From: Adineta vaga
Taxonomy: Eukaryota > Animalia > Rotifera
Length of the DNA stretch: 64,000 nucleotides
Assembly (NCBI GenBank): GCA_021613535.1
Contig: CP075495.1
Location: 2,294,001 to 2,358,000 of the forward strand
Direction: 5' to 3'
A program made the position numbers and the translations under genes. Under the pieces are notes generated by a model, which did no database searches, had not been told where the DNA came from, and saw only the letters and a program-made list of their open reading frames with translations. Positions 1 to 12,234 of this stretch are shown here, in pieces (positions within the stretch are counted from its first letter, which is position 1; every line of letters starts with the position of its first letter).

Positions 1-255
1 ATTACACGAAACTATACATTAAAACGATTCCAATAAATTCGTTTTTTTGTATCGATAGGACTTTATGTATTCATATAATAAATGTTTATTAGTTTATTCA
101 TTAGTATTCATTTTTCTTCTAAAAAAATAAAATATTTATAATTAATTTTCTCTGTTATTAATTATTTTATTAAGAGAAAAGCATTTGAAGGTATAGATTA
201 TCAAAAAGATTCTATATTGCGGATGGTCTCTCTTGAAATATGAACAACGTCTATT

Positions 256-380
256 ATAACGGGTGAGTCAAAACGAATGGTCTTCTTAGTATTTTCCGTG
301 TAACTCATTCATTTTTCAGTGCTTAAGAAAAAATTTTTTTACCGAAAGATTCCTCGTGAGACTCTCTACAAAATGTATAT
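256..380 (+). mobile_element. Possible Tc1/mariner-type MITE terminal fragment
   Basis: TAACGGGTGAGTCAAAA resembles TA-CAGGGTG-type Tc1/mariner ends; no partner end seen in the window. Confidence 0.2.
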
Positions 381-865
381 ATTTTTATTGTCTCAAATGA
401 TCTCCATTATTTTGTGACATGTGATACAATCTATTCATCTAAGAACTATAACTTTCAAAGAGTTTTGCTTTTATCTGAAAAGAAAACACTTATAATTAGA
501 ATAAACTTTAGTTTACAGATTGAAATTTAATATTTTGTTTTCGAAAGTTAATACATATTTAAACAATAACATCTGAGCTGTGTTCTCATATAACTAAGTT
601 GCCAGATCAATTCGTCTCACTATTGGGACAAGCTAAAAATACCTGTCCTCCAAAGTCGAGGGCTAAGTGAGTCGGCACGACGAGCGTTACTTGTTAAAAA
701 TGGAATAAAAAAGTGAAATGAATTTATAATTCGATTCTAAATTTGTAAATTTAACGAATAATTAGCAATACATCAAATTCTGTTCTTATGATTATCATTT
801 TCTTCTTTAGATAAACATCGGTTAAATGGATCATGAATTGTTGTTAAAATAATAAATATTAAAAG

Positions 866-927
866 TAGGGATGTCACTTTTGCGTTTCGTTCTGAATAAT
901 GGGAACGGGGAACGCTGACACCCCTGA
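866..927. mobile_element. Tiny hAT-like MITE / internally deleted element
   Basis: TAGGGATGTCA (866-876) and TGACACCCCTG (916-926) are a 9/11 inverted repeat resembling hAT termini; internal GCGTTTCGTTC / GAACGGGGAACGC also pair; near-direct 8-mers flank it (ATTAAAAG 858-865, ACTAAAAG 928-935). Confidence 0.5.
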
Positions 928-1130
928 ACTAAAAGAATACTGATGATTATGTTAGATAAATTTTGACATTTTTTCTTTATAAATCGAGTATCTTTAATAA
1001 ATATTATTGTTCTTTCTAAAGATACACAAGCATGTAGCCATTGATTCATTAAAAGACAAATTAACAGAAGGAAATCTAATCTTGAGTGAGGATGTGGGTG
1101 AGAGTATGTCTTCTTCAATCTAATTCTCGC

Positions 1131-2455
1131 TTAACAATTGAAATAAAGCATGACACCGTCGGATTGTTTAGCAATGATATCGATTTTATTGTCGCCATTC
1201 AAATCACTTGCAACTGCTAATATTTGAGAGGTTGCCGAAATAATTTGATAGGTAATTTTAGAACTAAAAATACCATTACCTTCATTAAAAAGAATACTGA
1301 TGTTGATATCAAGACTATTGGCAACAACTATATCAGGTTTGCTGTCATGATTAATATCAATAATGGTAAGAGATGTTGGAAAATAACCAACTGAATAAGT
1401 AAATTCAGATGAAAAAGTACTATTACCTTCTTTAAGAAAAATAGCGATTGTGGCCAATTCAGCATATCTAACAATAATGTCAGGTTTGTTATCGTTGGTC
1501 AGATCGGCTACGGCTAATGATGCTGGTGTAGTTTTGAGTGAATAAGTTATTGGAGAAAAATTACCAATACATGTATTATAAAGAATAACAAAATTGGGCA
1601 AAGACCGAACGAGAACAACAATATCAAGTTTTCCATTGTTATTCATATCGTTTACAGCAACTGGAATTGGACTAGAACCAATGGCGTACTGTGTTTCATT
1701 TACGAATGTCCCGTCGCCAAGATTAAGAAGAGTACAAACTTTTGTCGCACTCGGATGAGAGCCTCCGATCGCAAGATCGGGTTTGTCATTATTATTCACA
1801 TCCATTATTAGTATGGAGCTTGCATGGGTATCGACTGCGTAAGCAACCTCCTTCATGAATTTTCCATTTCCTGAATTGAGAAAAATAAGAATGTTAAGAT
1901 TAGCTCGTAGTCCAACAATAAGATCGGGTGCTTTATCATTATTTAAATCGGCCACAATTACTCCGTATGGAATATTATTAAGTAAATATTTAGTTTCATT
2001 TAGAAACGTTCCATTGCCAGCGTTGAAAAGAACAACAATATCGCCATGGAATTTGCCGTAGGTAACTGCAATGATATCGAGTTTTCCATCGATGTTTATA
2101 TCAGCAATTGTGACTGCATTTGAACCAGTAATCGAATAAATTGTTGGATTAGTAAACATACTGCTGCAAACTACCAAATAGAAAAAAGAATCCATATTTT
2201 TCTATATTGGTATACATCAATATTCAATTGTTGATTTTATTCAACTTTTCAACACAATTAAAGCTAGAAATATTAAAACTCGTATAATATATTACTGACC
2301 ATTTTCTGACAATGTTAGTGTTGTTGATATCGTTGTTATGAGTGTTCATATTGAGGTTGTCGAGGTGTGCATTGCTGTTAATTACGATGTAGAAAATATG
2401 ACTGTTTCTGTTGTTGATGATGATGATGAGGAGGAGGAGGAGGAGAAGACTAGCT
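1131..2455 (-). CDS. FG-GAP/VCBS repeat (beta-propeller) protein; upstream Ser/Thr-rich exon carries stops
   Basis: ORF 1131-2195 has about 7 D-x-N-x-D-x-K-x-D-I repeats with LNxGNGTF motifs. Acceptor at 2171 (exon from 2170); phase-compatible upstream exon 2455-2300 (SSSSS..TT) contains in-frame TAA and TGA. Confidence 0.8.
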
Positions 2456-3890
2456 CTATAGTAAAAAAAGATCAATATGAAACAAAAAAAATAGTAAGAT
2501 GTTCGTTGAAACTTTGCAATTGTCGATTAATTATTAGTATCTCTCTTGATATCCAACAATTACTCATTGTTTTATCATTCATTGACAACATGATTGTATA
2601 AGATTAAACGGAAAATCACCTGTTGTGAACATAACTTCTGCAGATGTCCTTCCATTTTTTATTAACAGAGCAGTTGTTTGACTAATTAGTCCTATTGTTA
2701 TTATTTAAACACAGATAATAATAAAACATTTGATCCACATTGATTTTCTTCTTCGAAATTGTCCACATCTATAAAAAAAAGTCAAAGATTTGTTATTGCT
2801 ATAATGAATAATAAACGTACAGTGAACTTGAATGAATAAGCGATGTTTGTGTTGAATTAGAATTAACTGAATCAGGCTACAATAAATAGATAAAGCAATA
2901 AAGATTCCTTTTATGTTATTTTCTTAATAAATAAATTACATAATCAAATCCTATTCTGTTGTTATTCATATTTAATTCTGTTTGAAATGAAATATTTTAA
3001 TAAACTGACAAAAGTAACCAAAATTCAGAAAAAAAAGCATAGTGAGAAGAGAAAATATATCATTGTCCTCTTATCAGCCAAAGTAATGAATAACATATGA
3101 AGAATAGGTTTCTTATTCTATATAGTCTCAAATAAAATAGAGAGTTTTTTACCAGAACAGATGAGAAAAATATTAACAGATATTCAGGTAGGTAGGAAAA
3201 TCAACATTACAAAAATTCAGCACAGAATTTCTGGAAAAGATTTACACTATTTCATACAATAGTATATTTTGTTCAAATAAGTGTTTTCAATGAAAAATAG
3301 TGATTGACCCATTTCGACTAAGAAATCGAGTACAATAGACAAAGACAAATAATATCAAGAGTTTTGCACTAAAATCTGTTTCATTGCATATTTCAGTGAA
3401 AGAACTAACGATATGGATATAATCCTAAAAATATCTTTTACAAATTATTTGATCAATAATGATTTCATATTAGTGATGATCAGTTTCAGGTTTACTATGT
3501 AAGCCATTATCAACATCAATTTATTGTGAGATAAAAAAAATTGATTCCCATCGATACCATCAAGATTCAATAAATGATTGAGAATTGATGAATAAAGTGT
3601 GGAATCGATACAGCTTGTCAAGTTCGACTTAAAACGGGTGACATTTGAACTGAAATGAATATATCCCATACGTCTTAATGTATAGTTTTCTTGAGGATAT
3701 GGGTGTAATTGATGATAGGATACTCATACCCTCGTGTCGATAAATTTATACTATTCAATATGATGTTAAATTAGTTACAGCAGTGATGCAAATACAAAAA
3801 CTAACATTATTCTTTCATAAAAGTTTTCAGTTCGATTACACAATAAATATAAAGGAAGTAAATAGCTTTACTCTTTCATTTATTTATTAA

Positions 3891-5320
3891 ATGTCGAAAA
3901 TATTAATGCTCGGTCTTTTTCCTACTGAAATACTTCATTATATATTCGAATATTTGTCAGCTTATGATATTCTATATGCATTTGATGGTCTCAATCGACG
4001 TATTGATGCGGTTTTACATAATTACGATAAATATGATTTTATTTGCCAATCAATTTCTCCTGAACAAATTCGATCATTTACATTATCCGATGCTGAGGAC
4101 ACAGTTCGACAAATTAATTTCTTCTTTCGATCGTTCTACATTCGACGACTTGTTAATCTCAAGTCACTAACATTAAACGAAATTGGTAAACAAGATTGGA
4201 ATAAACTTGCTTCTAAACTTCATTATTTAACTAATCTAACATCTCTGTCACTTATATCTTCCTGTCCACTTTCATATCCACCATCTGACGAAAAATTATC
4301 GCTAAAATCTTTAACTTGATGTCAATGTACTATAGATGAACTGCATCAATGGTTACTATGTACACCAATGCTAATCAATTTAGACGTTAAATTATATAAT
4401 ACTCTATCAAAAATGGCGAGTCCAATTGCAACGGATATTCACCGATTGAAAATCGAATTTTCATGAATGTACAAAATGAAATTTGAAGATCTTGAACTCT
4501 TATTTACTTATATGCCAAAATTAGAAATTTTAACATGTATTATGACCAATGAATACGATTTGACTTGCGATATTGAATGGAAAAAGATCTTATTGAAAAA
4601 TGTTTACCACAATTGAAAGAGTTTCGTTTTAAATATCAGACAAATGCAGATGAATATGTTACAAGATTATGGGAAACATTTCAAATACTTTTCTGGTTAG
4701 ACGAACATCAATCGGTCATACATTATAATTTTCATATGCCTAAGATTCTCAAAGATTGGTACAACTTCAATGCTCATCTGTATACATTACCTTATTGTGA
4801 TGAGGAATTTCATTTGGCTACGACAACAACATGTTTTACAAATGCTTCAAAATATGAATATCAATCAATTAAACATTTAAATTTACATGTTAATTCGAAA
4901 TATTATTCTCATCTGCTCGAACATTTTTATTTTCCTAATCTTGATTCATTAACAATTACTTCTACACATACTTCAATACCATTTATTGAATTTATTAATC
5001 TTTCTCAACTTAAACATTTAACTATTGAATCGGACAGTATAAGTTCAAAACAACTTTTCTCGCAAATTTTCTTACATACGATTAATTTTCAATCATTGAA
5101 ACTATCCTGGCGTCTTCTAACAGAATTAACTCAAAATTTTAGTAATCAACGAATATGTTCAATACTACAGAAACAAATTAAATCTTTACATTTATATAAG
5201 CGTTGTACATTTAAAAATGAAAAAGATGACCAGAATCCAATCGAAAAATTGATCGAAATATTTTCAGAAAATCTCGAGAAAATCAATATAGAATTTCTTA
5301 ATTCACTCTGTAGATCTTAA
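3891..5320 (+). pseudogene. F-box/LRR protein pseudogene
   Basis: N-terminal F-box (FPTEILHYIFEYLSAYDILYAF) and LRR-like LKSLTL repeats. Coding-like sequence continues through TGA at 4317-4319 and a second TGA near 4464, then frameshifts near 4580 into ORF 4577-5320. Confidence 0.8.
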
Positions 5321-5695
5321 CTGTAACGAGTAAATTGAGTTGGTATGCACACTATAAATAAGTATGTTCTTTCCTGCTTGTTAGACATAGGAAAGTTCCA
5401 AGTTCGAGTAGCTCATTGTATTTGATATTGCCGTACAGATCGTGATAGAGTTGAGTAACCCATCAAACATGTTGCAAAAGCAGTTTTATTCATTAAATCT
5501 GAACTATTTTGTCTAGCTTCTGAAAGTATGAAAATGAATATCAATAAATTTAAAATTCTCAACAACTAAATTTTGATTTATTTACATTTCGAAAATAATT
5601 CAATATATTAAATTTTATTCTCGAATTAACAATTAAAAATGACGACAGTCATACTCGATTGCAAACTAAGTTACAGTAGATTCTTTTGGAATATT

Positions 5696-6076
5696 CTATG
5701 GATCAATACGAGTAAATAGATTTGGCATAGCTGCCCGTTGTAGGACTTGATTTGTTGATTGCGGTACGGGTTGTGCTGATAATGAAAATTGTAACGGATA
5801 GCAATTTTTTAATAATTCCGCCAGATCAAAACGTTCTATTTTTTGCAAACGTTCAATTAGATAATTAACATTATCCATAGCAATTTTTCGTCGATCAAAC
5901 AATGCTTCCCAGATATCAGTCATTGGCGCGGCATTATTTCTCTCGACAACTTCAAGAACTCTACGTGGAACATCTTCACAACCAATAATAAAACATAGAC
6001 GTTTTCGTTCATCATTAGTTAACTGTTGATCAATCTTTAATAGAAGTGAACGTAATCTAAAATCAGCTCGTGCCAT
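5696..6076 (-). CDS. Single death effector domain (DED) protein
   Basis: FRLRSLLLKIDQQLTNDERKRLCFII...LFDRRKIAMDNVNYLIERLQKIERFDLAELL fits a DED including the RxDL motif; intronless; ATG at 6076. Confidence 0.8.
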   Translation of the reverse strand: MARADFRLRSLLLKIDQQLTNDERKRLCFIIGCEDVPRRVLEVVERNNAAPMTDIWEALFDRRKIAMDNVNYLIERLQKIERFDLAELLKNCYPLQFSLSAQPVPQSTNQVLQRAAMPNLFTRIDP

Positions 6077-6186
6077 CTTCAATAAAAAAAAGAAGAATAA
6101 CGAAAGAAAGAATCAATAAGCAAAAAGAAGAATCTGATCAAAGAAAAATAAATGGGATAAAAATCAAACAAAAAAGGCAAAATGAA

Positions 6187-9100
6187 TCACTGAATAGTAG
6201 GAACATCTGATTCTTGATGACGAAAATGTAAATTAAATAATGATTTAAACATTTCTAATTCATCTTTTTGTTCATTGGATTGAGCTAAAGCACTTATTGT
6301 TGTTGAACGTTGAAAATACTCTTCGAAGAATGTATAAACAGTAAAGAAAAGTATCTTCTGATTTGATGTTGTTGATGATAGAAGTTCATCAGCTTTAATA
6401 GCTGTTTCAAGAAGTTTACGTGCTAATGTTCGAGTAATAGGAATATGATCAATACAGAATTGAAGAGCTTCAACTATAAAATAATTTCCAAGAAGAATTT
6501 CTAAAATTTCTTCATTCGCATTTGTTAAACGTTTGAGCATATCAAGTGCCAATTGTGTTGTTGGTTGTTGCGTATTGGAAAGAGATAGAAGAAGACAAGC
6601 TAATACAAAACAAACATATTGTTTATTTTTTACACTTTTTTTTTCTATTCAAATTTCATCGATAGATTAAGTAATCTAGGAAACTTTCGTTTTCTCTGAT
6701 CGAAGAGTACAACCATATGAGTCATCGCTACGTTTGAAGAATGTGAAATACAATACTTTGAGAAAGGTAATCTCTGATAATGTCATATGCTCTTTAAGTT
6801 AGAGTTTACATATAGAAAAACTAGGGAATAAACTTTAAAAATATTAAGATTTCTATCATCACAAGATCTATTCTTACCAAGTTGTAGCGAATCCGTCAAA
6901 ACTTGATATTGAATTAATTGTTGAAGTTGAAAAAATTGATTATTTTTAACTAATAAATTGACTAATAATTCATAAATAAAATATTGAACAGGTATATTAT
7001 AATCATTTAATGAACGTATATATTCAATAATAATACTAGTTGGAAATTTAAATGATTGACTTTGATCATAATTATTTAATGTTGTATCATTCGATGTAAT
7101 TGATAATGAACGACGATAGGTTGTTGAACTTCCTATTGTTGATATTGATACAATTGTTGAAAATAATGAAAGAACAGAATAAATATCTGTTTGATCTAAT
7201 AAAGGACGAACTGGGGAATTTTCAATAAAAACTCGATTGATTCGATCAATTATTTCAATCCATAAATCTAAAACATGACTGGAACTGATATTGGATATAT
7301 TATTTGAATCGATTTCAACAGGTGTTATGTTATTTGTCAATAAAGTTCGTAATAAAGTCAATATAGATGCTTTTCCATTGGCACGTCGTAATAAAATATC
7401 AATTAGAAGTAAACGATCAGATATGATATCAAGTAAATAATCTAAATTAATTAATAAACACCATAAACATCCTAATTTCACATCAATGATTATATTTGGT
7501 AAGAAAACAATCCAATTCGATGAATACAGTTCGATTGTTGTTGATGATGTTGATATAGTTGATGAAAGTAATTGCCAATTAACATTAACAGGTTGTATTG
7601 ATTGTTGAGAAAGTAAAGGTTCATGAATAGTTTGAAAACCATCATATTGTGATGTCGATTTATCTTCAATATCATAAATATAACATGATGTTGTTGGTTG
7701 ATGATGAATTAAGATTAAATTATCGACAACATTTAATGCACATCGACCATGTAAGTTTAATCGTAAGATATGACGTTTTTGAGCTGGTTTATGATCATCT
7801 TCGATTTGATAGAGAACAACTTCGATTGAACCTTGTCCTAAAAGAAAGAACTAACTTTGTTTGTTTTTGTTTTTTATGTTAGAAAAGAAGATCAACGAAC
7901 CAGCAACTCGAAATAATTGTCGAACAATGAAAAGATATGATTTGCCATAAATATTTGCTAACATACAATCACGTTCAGTTAATTCATTACATCGTTTACT
8001 TGTCGATTGATTTGATGCGTTCGATGCAGTTGAATTCGAACGTAGATTTGTTACTTGTGGTAAATCAACTTCAAATTTGGGTAGTTTAGTTAATTGTTGC
8101 TGTTGAGTTTTATGAAATGAATATGGAATTAATGAATTACCTGCTGCCGTACCAGCTGATATAAGTAAAAGATTCATTTCACGTGAAAATAATTGCCAAT
8201 GTATATTTTGTATATCATAAGTTTTTAATTGTCGTAATGTTCGTTGTTTTGCAGTTAATAAATAATGTTCCAAAGATTGATCAGTAACGAAAATAATTTC
8301 TTTATCAGATAACCAATTGAAATCATATAATTTACTTGCTTTAGTTTTAGATAATTGTGAATATTCAATATTATCAGGTTGAAGAATCGTTGCTGCTGCT
8401 GTTGTTGTTGTTAGTGATGGACGACGTGGTGATGTAGGTAACGGTGGAATAGATGGAAAATTAAGAAATTCAACTGAATTGGAATTTCGTTTGATTGCTA
8501 GAACCGATAGATCAGAATTGAATTTTATCGATTGAATTGCACCTTTATCTTCAAGACGAAACGAATACGCTTGTTCATGACGATGACCTTTGACAGTTAC
8601 ACCTAAAATAAAACAAAACAAAATATATTTATTTGTTTTAAACAATGTTTGAGATGTTTTTCAATATCATGTGAAAAAGAATGATTTTATCCATCCAACT
8701 ATCTTACAACAATTTCATCATCATTTGAGTAAATTGGTTTGAGATTTGTTAACCAAATATCTTCAGGAATTTGTTCAATTGTTGTTTTATTTAATAGATT
8801 TTTCTTTTGTTTATCTCGTTTAGTTAATCGAATTGATTTATCATTGACAATTGGAATATCATTTCGATCGAATGTAGTGAAAACTTGTTCATGAAATGCA
8901 TTTGTATAATTGTCAAATGATGGTAAAGATGTTTCAGTTAGAAAACTTGTAGATTGATAAATATAGAAGTATTTCTTTTCATCAAATTGTACTTCATTGG
9001 AAAATTTCTCTAAACTATTTCCGAATATACAGATTTCTTTTAATTTATCTTTCATCCAATTCGAATAGAGAAGATTATTATGAATTGGTTTTGAACAAAA

Positions 9101-9768
9101 TGGAATGTAAATCAATGATGGACGAAGAATGGTTTGACAGGCTTGATTATTCTCTTTGAAAAGTTCATATTTGGAAAAAGTATTCGTCTTTTCCAGAAAA
9201 TTATATTCATCATTCGTCCAAATTGGATCATAGAGATAAATTATTTGAATTTGTTGTTCAAATCTTTCTTCGATTAATTTCAATAATGCATATTGATATT
9301 GAGATGAAAGAGAAAGATTAAGATGACCAAGACCATAACATAGAATATCAATCGATGTCAATTGTCGACTAATCCATTGTTGAAGATAATCTTGAAGTTG
9401 TAACCAGAAATAACTCGAGCGAATCAATTGAATTTTATTTTCAAGATTCTTCAATAATTGTTTATGATCAAATGATGATGATGATGATTCGATTGTTGGA
9501 TCAATTCTCATTCGACGATTTTGTTTTTTACGTCGTGTAAAACGAAAACTATCGGTATTTTCTGCTTGTTCATAAGACATATCTTATCTGAAAAGAAAGT
9601 GATGAAAATTTATTATTTATTCTCCTTACCCATAGCACCGGAACCACGAACACAAAACAATTGTTGATTATCTTTGTCATAGAATACGCTCGTACCATTA
9701 CTAATTGGTTCGAAAATGATCGGTTGAGATGATAGTTTTAGAAAATAACTTGTTTGGTTATTTAACAT
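6187..9768 (-). CDS. RMC1: Regulator of MON1-CCZ1 complex (C18orf8/Mic1 homolog), 4 exons
   Basis: Exons 9768-9630 (MLNNQTSYFLKLSSQPIIFEP..VFYDKDNQQLFCVRGSGAMG), 8602-7901 (VTVKG..SFRLEDKGAIQSIKF), 7837-6878 (ALNVVDNLILIHHQ; LYSSNWIVFLPNIIID), 6599-6187 (ACLLLSL..LALDMLKRL). All GT-AG and in phase; match recalled RMC1 motifs. Confidence 0.92.
6652..6866 (-). ncRNA. Candidate long box C/D-type intronic RNA in RMC1 last intron
   Basis: 278-nt intron (6600-6877) versus ~55-nt norm; GTGATGA C box (6862-6856), internal GCGATGA (6728-6722), terminal ATGA (6659-6656), stems GATAGA/TCTATC and CATATGA/TCATATG. Confidence 0.45.
8699..9580 (-). CDS. SRRD: SRR1-like protein, nested in RMC1 intron 1 on the same strand
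   Basis: Intronless 293 aa ORF with ILCYGLG, SQYQYALL, LYDPIW, LIYIPFC, NNLLYSNW, IFGNS and NAFHE motifs typical of the SRR1 family. Confidence 0.88.
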   Translation of the reverse strand: MSYEQAENTDSFRFTRRKKQNRRMRIDPTIESSSSSFDHKQLLKNLENKIQLIRSSYFWLQLQDYLQQWISRQLTSIDILCYGLGHLNLSLSSQYQYALLKLIEERFEQQIQIIYLYDPIWTNDEYNFLEKTNTFSKYELFKENNQACQTILRPSLIYIPFCSKPIHNNLLYSNWMKDKLKEICIFGNSLEKFSNEVQFDEKKYFYIYQSTSFLTETSLPSFDNYTNAFHEQVFTTFDRNDIPIVNDKSIRLTKRDKQKKNLLNKTTIEQIPEDIWLTNLKPIYSNDDEIVVR

Positions 9769-9896
9769 CTAGAAATATCAAAAGATACGAGAATTTCATT
9801 TTTTTTAATAGTTTTGTCTTATAACACGAAAAAAAGGAAAAGAAGGAAAGTGTATGTAGTTTATTTTGATGAAAATATTTCGTTTCTTTTTTTAAT

Positions 9897-10392
9897 TTAA
9901 TCACGAATCAATTCAGCAATCATTCCATAGAGATAATAGAAAAATGTAATCATATAAAAACCAAGTTTAATCCAACCTTCACGTTGAGCAGTATTCAAAC
10001 TTTGAGCATTCATAATGCTTGTTGGATCATAGATACCCAAGCCACTCATCACTGGACGTGTACGAAATTTATTAAGATGATAAGCAATTAATGGCATATT
10101 GAGAAACAATGTAAACCATTGTCCACCGAGAAGAAAGAGTAGATTAATGAATATATGCGTTGCATATTCAGGAATAATTAAAGGATTTAAAGATTTACAT
10201 TGTTCAATCGGATTTTTATGATCATTTTTTAATTCATCAAATGCAATGATCTATTTTTGAAGAAAAGAAAAATTGATGATATGAGAAAGAAACAGAAGAA
10301 AGAAACCTTACATGCCATATGGCAAAAAAGATAAGTAATGCTGTAAGAATAAGTGCAGCAAGATAGGCAAATGCAACAAATGTAAAAGACAT
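9897..10392 (-). CDS. CNIH: Cornichon family cargo receptor, 2 exons
   Basis: Exon 10392-10312 MSFTFVAFAYLAALILTALLIFFAIWH; exon 10250-9897 IIAFDELKNDHKNPIEQC..IPEY..YDPTSIMN..EGWIKLGFY. Confidence 0.95.
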
Positions 10393-10807
10393 GATAAATC
10401 TGAATATAAATGTATGAGAATTGTTTGTTAACTTGTCTTTTTGTGGAATATTGGATGGACTCTAGATATCAAATGAATGAATGAGCAGTGCGAAGTAAAT
10501 ATGTATGAGTACATTTACATTAATTGGTGGATTTATATCGAATAGAATTTGAGCGCTATGATTCATCATTTGTAGACATTTGTTTTCGTCATCCTCGCTT
10601 TTGATTTGCTATTGTTAATGACAAGTTGATATGTCGTGAATGATACTGATTGGATATTCTCTTTTATGTTATTTTGCTTCTGCTAGATGCTAGTAGTCTT
10701 TACTTGTTAATGAATCAGAATTATAGTGACACGTAGCTCAAAGATTCTTTTACTTTATAAATCAACAAAATATTAACATTTATATTTATTTTTTTCTTCA
10801 GATATTA

Positions 10808-12234
10808 ATGGCTTTAAAGATCTCTTTTATATTTCTCGCTCTATTCATCTGCTTTTACTTTGTAAATATTGTTTCAACTAATGAAGAAGAATGTCAGTTA
10901 TCTCGACAGAATGACATGGTTGATGATTGTAATTGTCGTATATCTGATATTAATGAATTGAATAATCAACGTTTATATCCATTATTACGACAAATTGTTA
11001 AGAAGAATTACTTTCGATTCTTTCCTGTTAATTTGAAAAAGAAATGTCAATTCTGGCCTGATCATGGTCAATGTTCACTTCGAACATGTGCAATCAAATC
11101 TTGTCCAATTGACAAATTACCCGAAAATCTTCGTGAAACATTCAATAGTAATAAACTTATTCGTTCTGCAATGAATAAACCAGATGAACAAAAACCAGAA
11201 CAATGTCCACCTACGGATAGCAATTCATCACTCGGTGTTGTTAATAAAGATTTAAGTGCTGAACATAAACAAACAATTGAAAATTGGTTGAAATTCGATG
11301 ATATTCAATCCGATAATTTTTGTGATGTTGACGATGAAACTTCTTCGGAATTAGAATATATTGATTTATTACTCAATGTTGAACGTTTTACGGGTTATAC
11401 AGGTGAATCAACACAAAGAGTTTGGTCAGCAATTTACAATGAAAATTGTTTTTTCCTACCCGATTCGAAACCCTATTATAATCTTCGACAAAAACGTTTA
11501 AATGCAGATAAGATGTGTCTTGAAGGTCGAACATTTTATCGTCTTATCTCTGGTCTTCATTCAAGTATTAGTATTCATTTATGTGCGCAATATTTCTTTC
11601 CAGCCGTTGGCGGTGGTTATTCTGGCTCCGATGGACGATGGGGACCAAATCTTGAAGAATTTCGTCGTCGTTTTGATCCCGAAACAACAGATAGCGAAGG
11701 TCCTGCATGGTTAAAAAATCTTTATTTTATCTATTTGATTGAATTACGTGCTATCTATAAAGCACGTGATTATCTACAAAGTCAAACCTACTTTACTGGC
11801 AATCAAACGGATGATATACTTACAAAAAAATTATTAACAGAACATCTGTTTCAGGAAATTGAACCATTTGCAAATTATTTCAATGAAAATGATCTTTTCA
11901 AAAATGGGAATGAAGAATTGAAAAATGAATTTCGAGAACATTTCCGAAATATTAGTCGAATTATGGATTGTGTTGGTTGTGATAAATGTAAATTATGGGG
12001 TAAATTACAAGTGCAAGCATTAGGTAAGAAAGAAAGAAAAAAAGAGTTTTTTTTTGTGAAATTTTATTTTTTTTCTTAGGAACAACATTGAAAATTCTTT
12101 TTGCTGAAAGTCCTATTCAATTACAACGATCGGAAGTTGTTTCACTAATCAATGGTTTTACTCAGTTGTCAACGAGCATCTATCGACTTGAACATGCATT
12201 TAAGACATGTCTGAAGAACCATATTGAACTCTAA
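10808..12234 (+). CDS. ERO1: ER oxidoreductin 1, 2 exons
   Basis: Signal peptide, NYFRFFPVNL, CQFW..C, ERFTGY, FYRLISGLHSSI, RIMDCVGCDKCKLWGKLQ; intron 12024-12079; ends HIEL*. Confidence 0.96.

Follow-up and report, generated by a model that had tools for sequence, protein, structure and literature searches.

A complete SRRD gene within the first coding intron of RMC1 in bdelloid rotifers, a candidate intron-embedded cistron of an operon-like unit

How can a single strand of DNA yield the messengers of two unrelated proteins if the whole of one gene lies inside a coding intron of the other? The question is raised by a locus of the bdelloid rotifer Adineta vaga, found in the 64,000-nucleotide (nt) stretch of contig CP075495.1 that was analysed (assembly GCA_021613535.1, positions 2,294,001 to 2,358,000 of the forward strand, hereafter the window), where an open reading frame (ORF) for SRRD almost fills the 1027-nt intron between the first two coding exons of RMC1. 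Here, I argue that SRRD is probably an intron-embedded cistron of an operon-like unit, ordered cornichon, RMC1 exon 1, SRRD, RMC1 exons 2-4 and a death-effector-domain (DED) gene, and that it would be released from this unit by trans-splicing; the reading is given a probability of roughly 0.55. The locus itself is real and ancient, and the key RNA steps of the reading are unproven.

The features of the nested pair, in window coordinates, are as follows.

9630-9768, minus strand: RMC1 coding exon 1, of 46 codons plus one base, from the ATG at 9768 to an end in phase 1, then GTAAGG with its GT at 9629-9628
9588-9629, minus strand: 42-nt spacer, which opens with the host donor GTAAGG and closes with a pyrimidine tract and CAG, a putative acceptor of the spliced leader for SRRD
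8699-9587, minus strand: SRRD exon, with a short leader stretch (9581-9587) and an ORF at 9580-8699 of 293 amino acids (aa), ending in the stop codon TAG at 8701-8699
8603-8707, minus strand: optional 105-nt intron from the SRRD exon to RMC1 exon 2, with donor GTAAGA (GT at 8707-8706) and acceptor AG at 8604-8603
8628-8633, minus strand: AATAAA, candidate SRRD polyadenylation signal, 24 nt before the RMC1 exon 2 acceptor
8602-7900, 7836-6878 and 6599-6187, minus strand: RMC1 exons 2-4, matching Pfam RMC1_N and RMC1_C, with joints present in RNA contigs
7899-7837 and 6877-6600, minus strand: RMC1 introns removed in RNA contigs

The acceptor AG of SRRD (9589-9588) therefore lies 42 nt past the RMC1 donor and 7 nt ahead of the SRRD ATG at 9580, and the 188 nt from the RMC1 ATG to the SRRD ATG are made up of RMC1 exon 1, the 42-nt spacer and the 7-nt leader.

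Are both genes what they seem? The SRRD ORF belongs to the SRR1 family (Pfam PF07985, 93.9 bits against a cut-off of 24, E = 1.3e-26), its residues 74-232 matching profile positions 12-168 of 172, and its orthologues, which are named SRR1-like in public records, are 46-81% identical. The genome (100.8 Mb in six contigs, the window lying within contig 2) was searched for copy number and for leader words, and SRRD and RMC1 are each single-copy in it. The RMC1 exons were searched one by one, joined pieces being only translated locally for frame checks. RMC1_N (PF21029) is matched by exon 2 with 84.4 bits (E = 8e-24) and RMC1_C (PF07035) by the later exons with 70.6 and 56.7 bits; on the RMC1_N profile, exon 1 covers positions 1-19 and exon 2 positions 21-119. 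Likewise, exon 1 aligns with residues 3-45 of Drosophila Mic1 (8c7g_A, E = 1e-5) and with residues 3-43 of human RMC1 (9l0d_C), and the first residue of exon 2 corresponds to human residue 46 in a match to 9l0d_C with E = 8e-27. Exon 1 shows a pN/pS of 0.06-0.19 among four species, and its protein identity reaches 78-85% between bdelloid lineages in which SRRD is only 58-64% identical. Moreover, exon 2 is devoid of methionine for about 170 codons, and a public A. vaga protein (P0043, 737 aa) joins exons 1 and 2 exactly (..GSGAMG/VTVKG..). As far as sequence evidence reaches, exon 1 is the true N-terminus of RMC1.

Is the nesting a peculiarity of one assembly? The same order, including the opposite-strand gene ERO1, is found in A. 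ricciae (L032), A. steineri (L033) and Didymodactylos carnosus (L003/L004), the last with an RMC1 exon 1 that is only partly recognisable, and again in six more bdelloid lineages drawn from metagenomes and sequencing runs (L005; L006 and L009; L007 and L008; L010-L015; L016; L017). The public models of four Rotaria species hold exon 1, SRRD and RMC1 in one protein, which implies the same gene order there. By this comparison, the nesting is older than the split of the sampled bdelloid families.

The signals around SRRD are kept along with the layout. The host donor (..ATGG/GTAAG) stays in phase 1 across lineages; in nine other lineages it is separated by 37-47 nt from an acceptor of the form YnAG/AT.., and the SRRD acceptor stands 4-36 nt ahead of the SRRD ATG across lineages, abutting it in D. 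carnosus. If exon 1 were cis-joined to this acceptor, SRRD would fall out of frame in each of the nine lineages in which this could be measured. In nine lineages out of ten, the stretch from the SRRD stop to the exon 2 acceptor holds an AATAAA, which overlaps the stop in L017; shuffled spacers carry one with a probability of 0.01-0.2 each, and the spacers are otherwise unalignable. The donor directly after the ..EIV codon, of the type seen at 8707 in A. vaga, is present also in A. ricciae, A. steineri and L005.

On the layout, the initial annotation of the window holds well. Each position that it gave for the nesting is correct on the minus strand, and its placing of SRRD on the same strand within RMC1, with exon 1 as part of the host gene, agrees with Pfam, with the fly and human alignments and with P0043. 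The acceptor that it had noticed just before the SRRD ATG turns out to be kept across lineages, and its prediction that exon 1 cis-spliced at 9588 would run out of frame into a TGA inside SRRD is matched by local translation of the hypothetical join to 9587, which reads 46 aa of RMC1 and 26 out-of-frame aa before a TGA near 9510-9508. The comparison with other rotifer assemblies that it had suggested finds the layout in about ten bdelloid lineages, and mis-assembly, which it had allowed for, is excluded because these assemblies are independent.

What do the RNAs look like? The RNA data consist of assembled contigs from four runs (X1, X5, X9 and X10) and hold no raw reads; that the runs are RNA follows from the removal of the cornichon intron and of both later RMC1 introns in the contigs. 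Contig assembly clips short ends and minor branches, and a contig may be stitched from overlapping molecules, so that the absence of a junction, leader or tail from the contigs is not taken as evidence. Contig holes may reflect allelic divergence or contig clean-up (those over 9646-9924 fall where X10 is rich in allelic differences), and no argument on abundance is drawn from depth or from the holes in exon 1.

Both genes are expressed, the SRRD exon being covered by contigs from all four runs. A contig of X10 (2191 nt) runs from 9399 to 8708, then from 8602 to 7900, then from 7836 to 7041, and hence contains a junction 8708/8602: the own donor of SRRD at 8707, two codons before its TAG, is spliced to the acceptor of RMC1 exon 2, which is thereby seen in use. 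In the SRRD frame this splice reads ..DDEIV-V and then TAA at 8599-8597; with the stop reached so soon, two codons into exon 2, no fusion protein is made. The intron 8707-8603 encloses the AATAAA, and therefore the candidate polyadenylation signal sits in an optional intron of SRRD, which is spliced out in the X10 contig and retained in a contig of X9. The latter (3411 nt) is unspliced from 9399 to 7900, lacks the later introns and reaches 5647, past the DED gene; another X9 contig (9645-9485) passes unspliced from RMC1 exon 1 into SRRD. Many SRRD RNAs extend into RMC1 exons, and read-through reaches the end of the row, as contigs of X5 and X9 are continuous from RMC1 exon 4 across the 110-nt gap into the DED gene. 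A contig of X5 ends at 8624, with no tail listed.

Two further observations concern the contigs of this stretch. A second haplotype in X1 shows four differences near the exon 2 acceptor (8562, 8580, 8605 and 8609), the AG being kept. Contigs of X1 and X10 match SRRD up to 9265 and then carry 150 nt of unrelated letters; this breakpoint is probably a graph chimera formed via a shared low-complexity word.

Does the nested pair belong to a larger unit? Its neighbours are the following.

9897-10392, minus strand: cornichon gene (Pfam PF03311, E = 6e-16), first gene of the row
10312-10392, 10251-10311 and 9897-10250, minus strand: cornichon exon 1, intron and exon 2, with the joint 10250/10312 present in an RNA contig
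5696-6076, minus strand: DED gene (Pfam DED, E = 2.8e-11), last gene of the row
from 10808, plus strand: ERO1, opposite-strand neighbour of the row

The five members of the row (cornichon, RMC1 exon 1, SRRD, RMC1 exons 2-4 and the DED gene) stand head to tail on the minus strand, with gaps of 128 nt, 49 nt and 110 nt and with an AG 0-7 nt ahead of the ATGs of RMC1, SRRD and DED. The AG at 9770-9769 immediately precedes the RMC1 ATG; the DED gene begins 110 nt past the RMC1 stop, with TTGAAG immediately before its ATG. The median intergenic distance in A. vaga is 0.8 kb (PMC5916493), as against the spacings of 110-128 nt in the row. The end of the cornichon message is seen directly: a contig of X5 runs from 10136 to 9768 and then continues with eight A that are absent from the genome (T8 on the plus strand), marking a poly(A) site at 9769/9768, with an ATTAAA (9809-9804) 35 nt upstream. 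This site falls exactly at the RMC1 acceptor TTTCTAG/ATG.

Some side observations on the row may be recorded here. RMC1 intron 3 (6600-6877) has a length of 278 nt where the genome median is 58, and the RMC1 of L006, being intron-less, does not have it; an Rfam scan of 5000-11500 with E allowed up to 1 found nothing, and the RNA contigs leave this 278-nt intron uncovered. In the part of the window from 5647 to 6599, there is no obvious AATAAA or ATTAAA in the 110-nt gap between RMC1 and DED.

A spliced leader is in use right beside the row. ERO1 contigs in X1 and X10 open with CTTACCAAG and continue at 10800 on the plus strand (AG/ATATTAATG), and these nine opening letters coincide with the last nine of the rotifer spliced leader, published as a sequence of 23 nt (PMC3795323). 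The contigs are direct evidence that trans-splicing takes place 6 nt ahead of the ERO1 ATG. In the genome, the 14-mer formed by the 3' end of the leader and GT occurs 53 times, compared with 0-2 times for a reversed control. Most copies form inverted pairs with a distance of about 167 nt, and there are clusters on contigs 2, 5 and 6 (examples of sites are C1:1639465-1639645 and C5:9884354-9925971); the inverted pairs are presumably head-to-head pairs of spliced-leader RNA genes. As to SRRD itself, in a relative, contig L008 has its first letters precisely at AG/ATAATAG of the SRRD acceptor, which fits a graph branch between leader-joined and unspliced RNA and is no more than a hint. Ten metagenome matches to the leader 3' end followed by the SRRD start were all due to chance, none having homology to SRRD.

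From these observations, the following course of events can be envisaged. One precursor RNA, started at a single promoter, would be transcribed through the whole row. For the RMC1 messenger, the donor at 9629 would pair with the acceptor at 8603, and SRRD would leave in a lariat of 1027 nt. For the SRRD messenger, the leader would be trans-spliced at 9588, being joined to 9587, and exon 1 would be discarded; the RMC1 and SRRD products of any one molecule would therefore be mutually exclusive. The 3' end of SRRD may take two forms, a short one, cleaved after the AATAAA at 8633-8628 near the exon 2 acceptor, and a long one, in which the 105-nt intron is spliced out or read through and RMC1 exons 2-4 would serve as 3' untranslated region. 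The row would be a unit like those of the tunicate-type operon, where each message ends at the point at which its successor begins. The idea in the initial annotation of a choice between splicing and polyadenylation is consistent with the AATAAA conserved in nine of the ten lineages and with the use of the rotifer spliced leader by this organism; it missed the 8708/8602 splice as a third outcome. Its other suggestion, that SRRD mRNA might be recovered from the excised intron, finds no support.

A further idea, that base pairing loops out SRRD and so brings together host donor and acceptor, is not claimed. There is a perfect 14-nt complementarity between 9481-9468 and 8728-8715, one half in the 5' and the other in the 3' part of the SRRD ORF, and in eight species the duplex energies are slightly more favourable than those of shuffles, with z values from -0.4 to -3.3 (30 mononucleotide shuffles), a signal too weak for such a role.

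Several points tell against release of SRRD by trans-splicing from one precursor. Bdelloid introns are reported mostly at 30-100 nt, and the 42-nt spacer falls within this range, so that cis-splicing of exon 1 to 9587 is feasible; the argument that the spacer is too short for cis-splicing has accordingly been dropped. In the four contig sets, in which short ends are clipped, the spliced leader was not seen at 9587 or 9768; nor was it seen at 6076, ahead of DED, in the same sets. The 9630/8602 junction was likewise not seen in them, its support in A. vaga being homology and the public gene model, and no poly(A) tail near 8610 appears in the contigs, which show 3' ends unreliably. Contigs that bridge genes do not prove a single molecule. 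As to conservation, the spacer of L007 has neither AATAAA nor ATTAAA, and the 8707-type donor is confined to Adineta-like lineages, D. carnosus having instead a GTAAGA 7 nt past the stop.

How else could the two messengers arise? SRRD might be an ordinary nested gene, with its own promoter in RMC1 exon 1 or in the cornichon 3' untranslated region and its own polyadenylation signal, sharing nothing but DNA with RMC1. Animals have many nested genes driven by promoters of their own, the AATAAA that follows SRRD is conserved and no spliced leader has been seen on SRRD in the contigs; yet the 188 nt between the two ATGs are taken up by a coding exon under purifying selection and a spacer of 37-47 nt, a strong acceptor that a capped, non-spliced mRNA would not need stands directly before the SRRD ATG in all lineages, and an RNA contig is continuous from exon 1 into SRRD. 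Moreover, splicing of the SRRD exon to exon 2 of RMC1 means that the two genes share RNA. Such a promoter is on balance unlikely, even if the statement in the initial annotation that there is no room for one is a judgement and not an observation. Less likely again is SRRD as a cassette exon of RMC1, cis-spliced at 9630-9587 and 8708-8602, whose inclusion would disrupt the RMC1 frame, so that it would serve as a poison exon controlling RMC1, and which would yield SRRD by leaky scanning or reinitiation. A splice signal is present on either flank and the 3' one is seen in use, an intron of 42 nt is within the size reported for bdelloids, and the cis join sets the SRRD ATG out of frame in 9/9 measurable lineages, the short upstream ORF ending at 9510-9508. 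None of the four RNA runs, however, contains the 9630/9587 joint in its contigs, where the unspliced form is present (raw reads could reveal a minor form); SRRD is the sole copy of a conserved gene, and its translation behind an overlapping upstream ORF of 72 codons would be poor. The donor at 8707 is missing in most lineages other than Adineta, and the cassette form is therefore not a conserved route to SRRD.

A genuine SRRD-RMC1 fusion protein, as annotated in A. steineri, at one copy in A. ricciae and in four Rotaria species, is very improbable. It would account for public models with both SRR1 and RMC1 domains, but the only junction seen in RNA leads to a stop two codons into exon 2, no fewer than four conflicting joins from SRRD to exon 2 occur among the models, and the in-frame acceptor that they use inside SRRD has no pyrimidine tract; SRRD inserted after residue 46 would, besides, split the N-terminal domain of RMC1, which aligns free of gaps to solved structures. 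Finally, the layout might be an artefact of assembly or annotation, exon 1 being a chance ORF and RMC1 starting at exon 2. The 9630/8602 junction is indeed missing from the contigs, but the opening 45 residues of RMC1 from fly and human have their match in exon 1, which has retained its protein sequence across species (78-85% identity) despite many synonymous changes, exon 2 offers no start codon for about 170 codons, and some ten independent assemblies agree. This last reading has a negligible probability and is regarded as refuted within the reach of sequence evidence.

Release of SRRD as an intron-embedded cistron, which remains the preferred reading, has relatives among known systems. At the cholinergic locus of Caenorhabditis elegans, unc-17 lies in the first intron of cha-1 and both arise by alternative processing of one precursor (PMC3875643). 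The likeness of that locus (cha-1/unc-17; ChAT/VAChT in other animals) is that there, too, a complete same-strand gene lies in the first intron of its host. The differences are that the cholinergic genes share a non-coding first exon, whereas the first exon of the host is here coding and out of frame with SRRD, and that they act in one pathway, whereas SRRD and RMC1 have no known functional link. A common 5' exon, characteristic of the cholinergic type, was not found in the form of a 9630/9587 joint in the four contig sets; the 5' end of the nested SRRD comes most likely from the spliced leader, unlike the shared exon of the cholinergic locus. In unc-60 of the same nematode, an upstream block of exons has its own polyadenylation site and a downstream block is reached by splicing across it (PMC3875643). 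The choice between splicing and polyadenylation is alike, but unc-60 yields two isoforms of one protein family (UNC-60A and UNC-60B) from a shared first exon, as opposed to two unrelated proteins, and the SRRD exon, unlike its counterpart there, can also be spliced to exon 2 of the host.

Operons offer a second set of comparisons. Those of Ciona are devoid of intercistronic regions (PMC1488885). The row resembles them in that its genes are about 100 nt apart, in that an acceptor stands directly before the downstream ATG and in that the upstream mRNA ends at the next acceptor, as between cornichon and RMC1. In the SL1-type operon of C. elegans, reportedly the subject of work by Williams, Xu and Blumenthal in 1999, two reactions are said to compete. 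The cistrons of Ciona and SL1-type operons are sequential, whereas SRRD sits inside a coding intron of RMC1, so that the release of SRRD would destroy the host mRNA. The secreted and membrane forms of the immunoglobulin heavy chain are an instance of intronic polyadenylation, with composite terminal exons. With these the locus shares an AATAAA in an intron (8707-8603) whose removal would compete with cleavage; unlike in such cases, the downstream exons belong to another gene and add one codon and a stop. Distinctive of SRRD/RMC1 are an acceptor some 40 nt past the host donor, and a nested optional last intron that shares the acceptor of the host and holds the candidate polyadenylation signal. 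Rotifers have been named among the lineages with trans-splicing and operons (PMC12460157), and a described rotifer operon or nested cistron was not found in the literature searched. The locus is thus a variation on known kinds, namely nested alternative-processing loci and spliced-leader operons.

A more far-reaching proposal can be offered only tentatively. The locus may exemplify a kind of operon so far undescribed outside bdelloids, where one cistron sits in a coding intron of another, with a trans-splice acceptor a mere 37-47 nt past the 5' splice site of the host and with the 3' end signal of the nested gene right beside the next host acceptor. A three-way contest for one acceptor (host donor, nested donor and cleavage) would set the ratio of two unrelated housekeeping proteins; selection would have maintained this contest from the bdelloid ancestor onwards, and it might recur at other loci of the genome.

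How has the locus fared in public annotation? An exact look-up of the 293-aa SRRD protein returned no record, and in the collections searched A. vaga is annotated with RMC1 only. A. ricciae has, at one copy, SRRD together with a Mic1 truncated at the N-terminus and, at another, a fusion of 1004 aa; its SRRD model P0068 ends in ..EIVV, with a 90-nt intron and a TGA just inside RMC1 exon 2, and so uses the homologue of the 8708/8602 junction. In A. steineri and Rotaria there are fusion models of 934-1052 aa, in which the joins from SRRD to exon 2 differ from model to model: one fusion model translates the AATAAA spacer, and another is short of the conserved final 60 residues, which the intact genomic ORF does encode. 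Over the three taxa, A. steineri, A. ricciae and Rotaria, the fusion models include P0038, P0039-P0041, P0044, P0067, P0076 and P0087. They look like artefacts of gene predictors faced with a same-strand nested gene. With at least four incompatible annotations of the locus in circulation, orthology tables of rotifer SRRD and RMC1, and inferences from domain fusion, are unreliable.

The locus provides a natural test case for how the spliceosome chooses between cis- and trans-splicing, for a 5' splice site with an acceptor only 42 nt further on, which probably takes the leader, must reach an acceptor 1 kb away. The mRNA of one protein would be made at the cost of that of the other. For the operon biology of rotifers, as yet undescribed, it is a well-conserved example.

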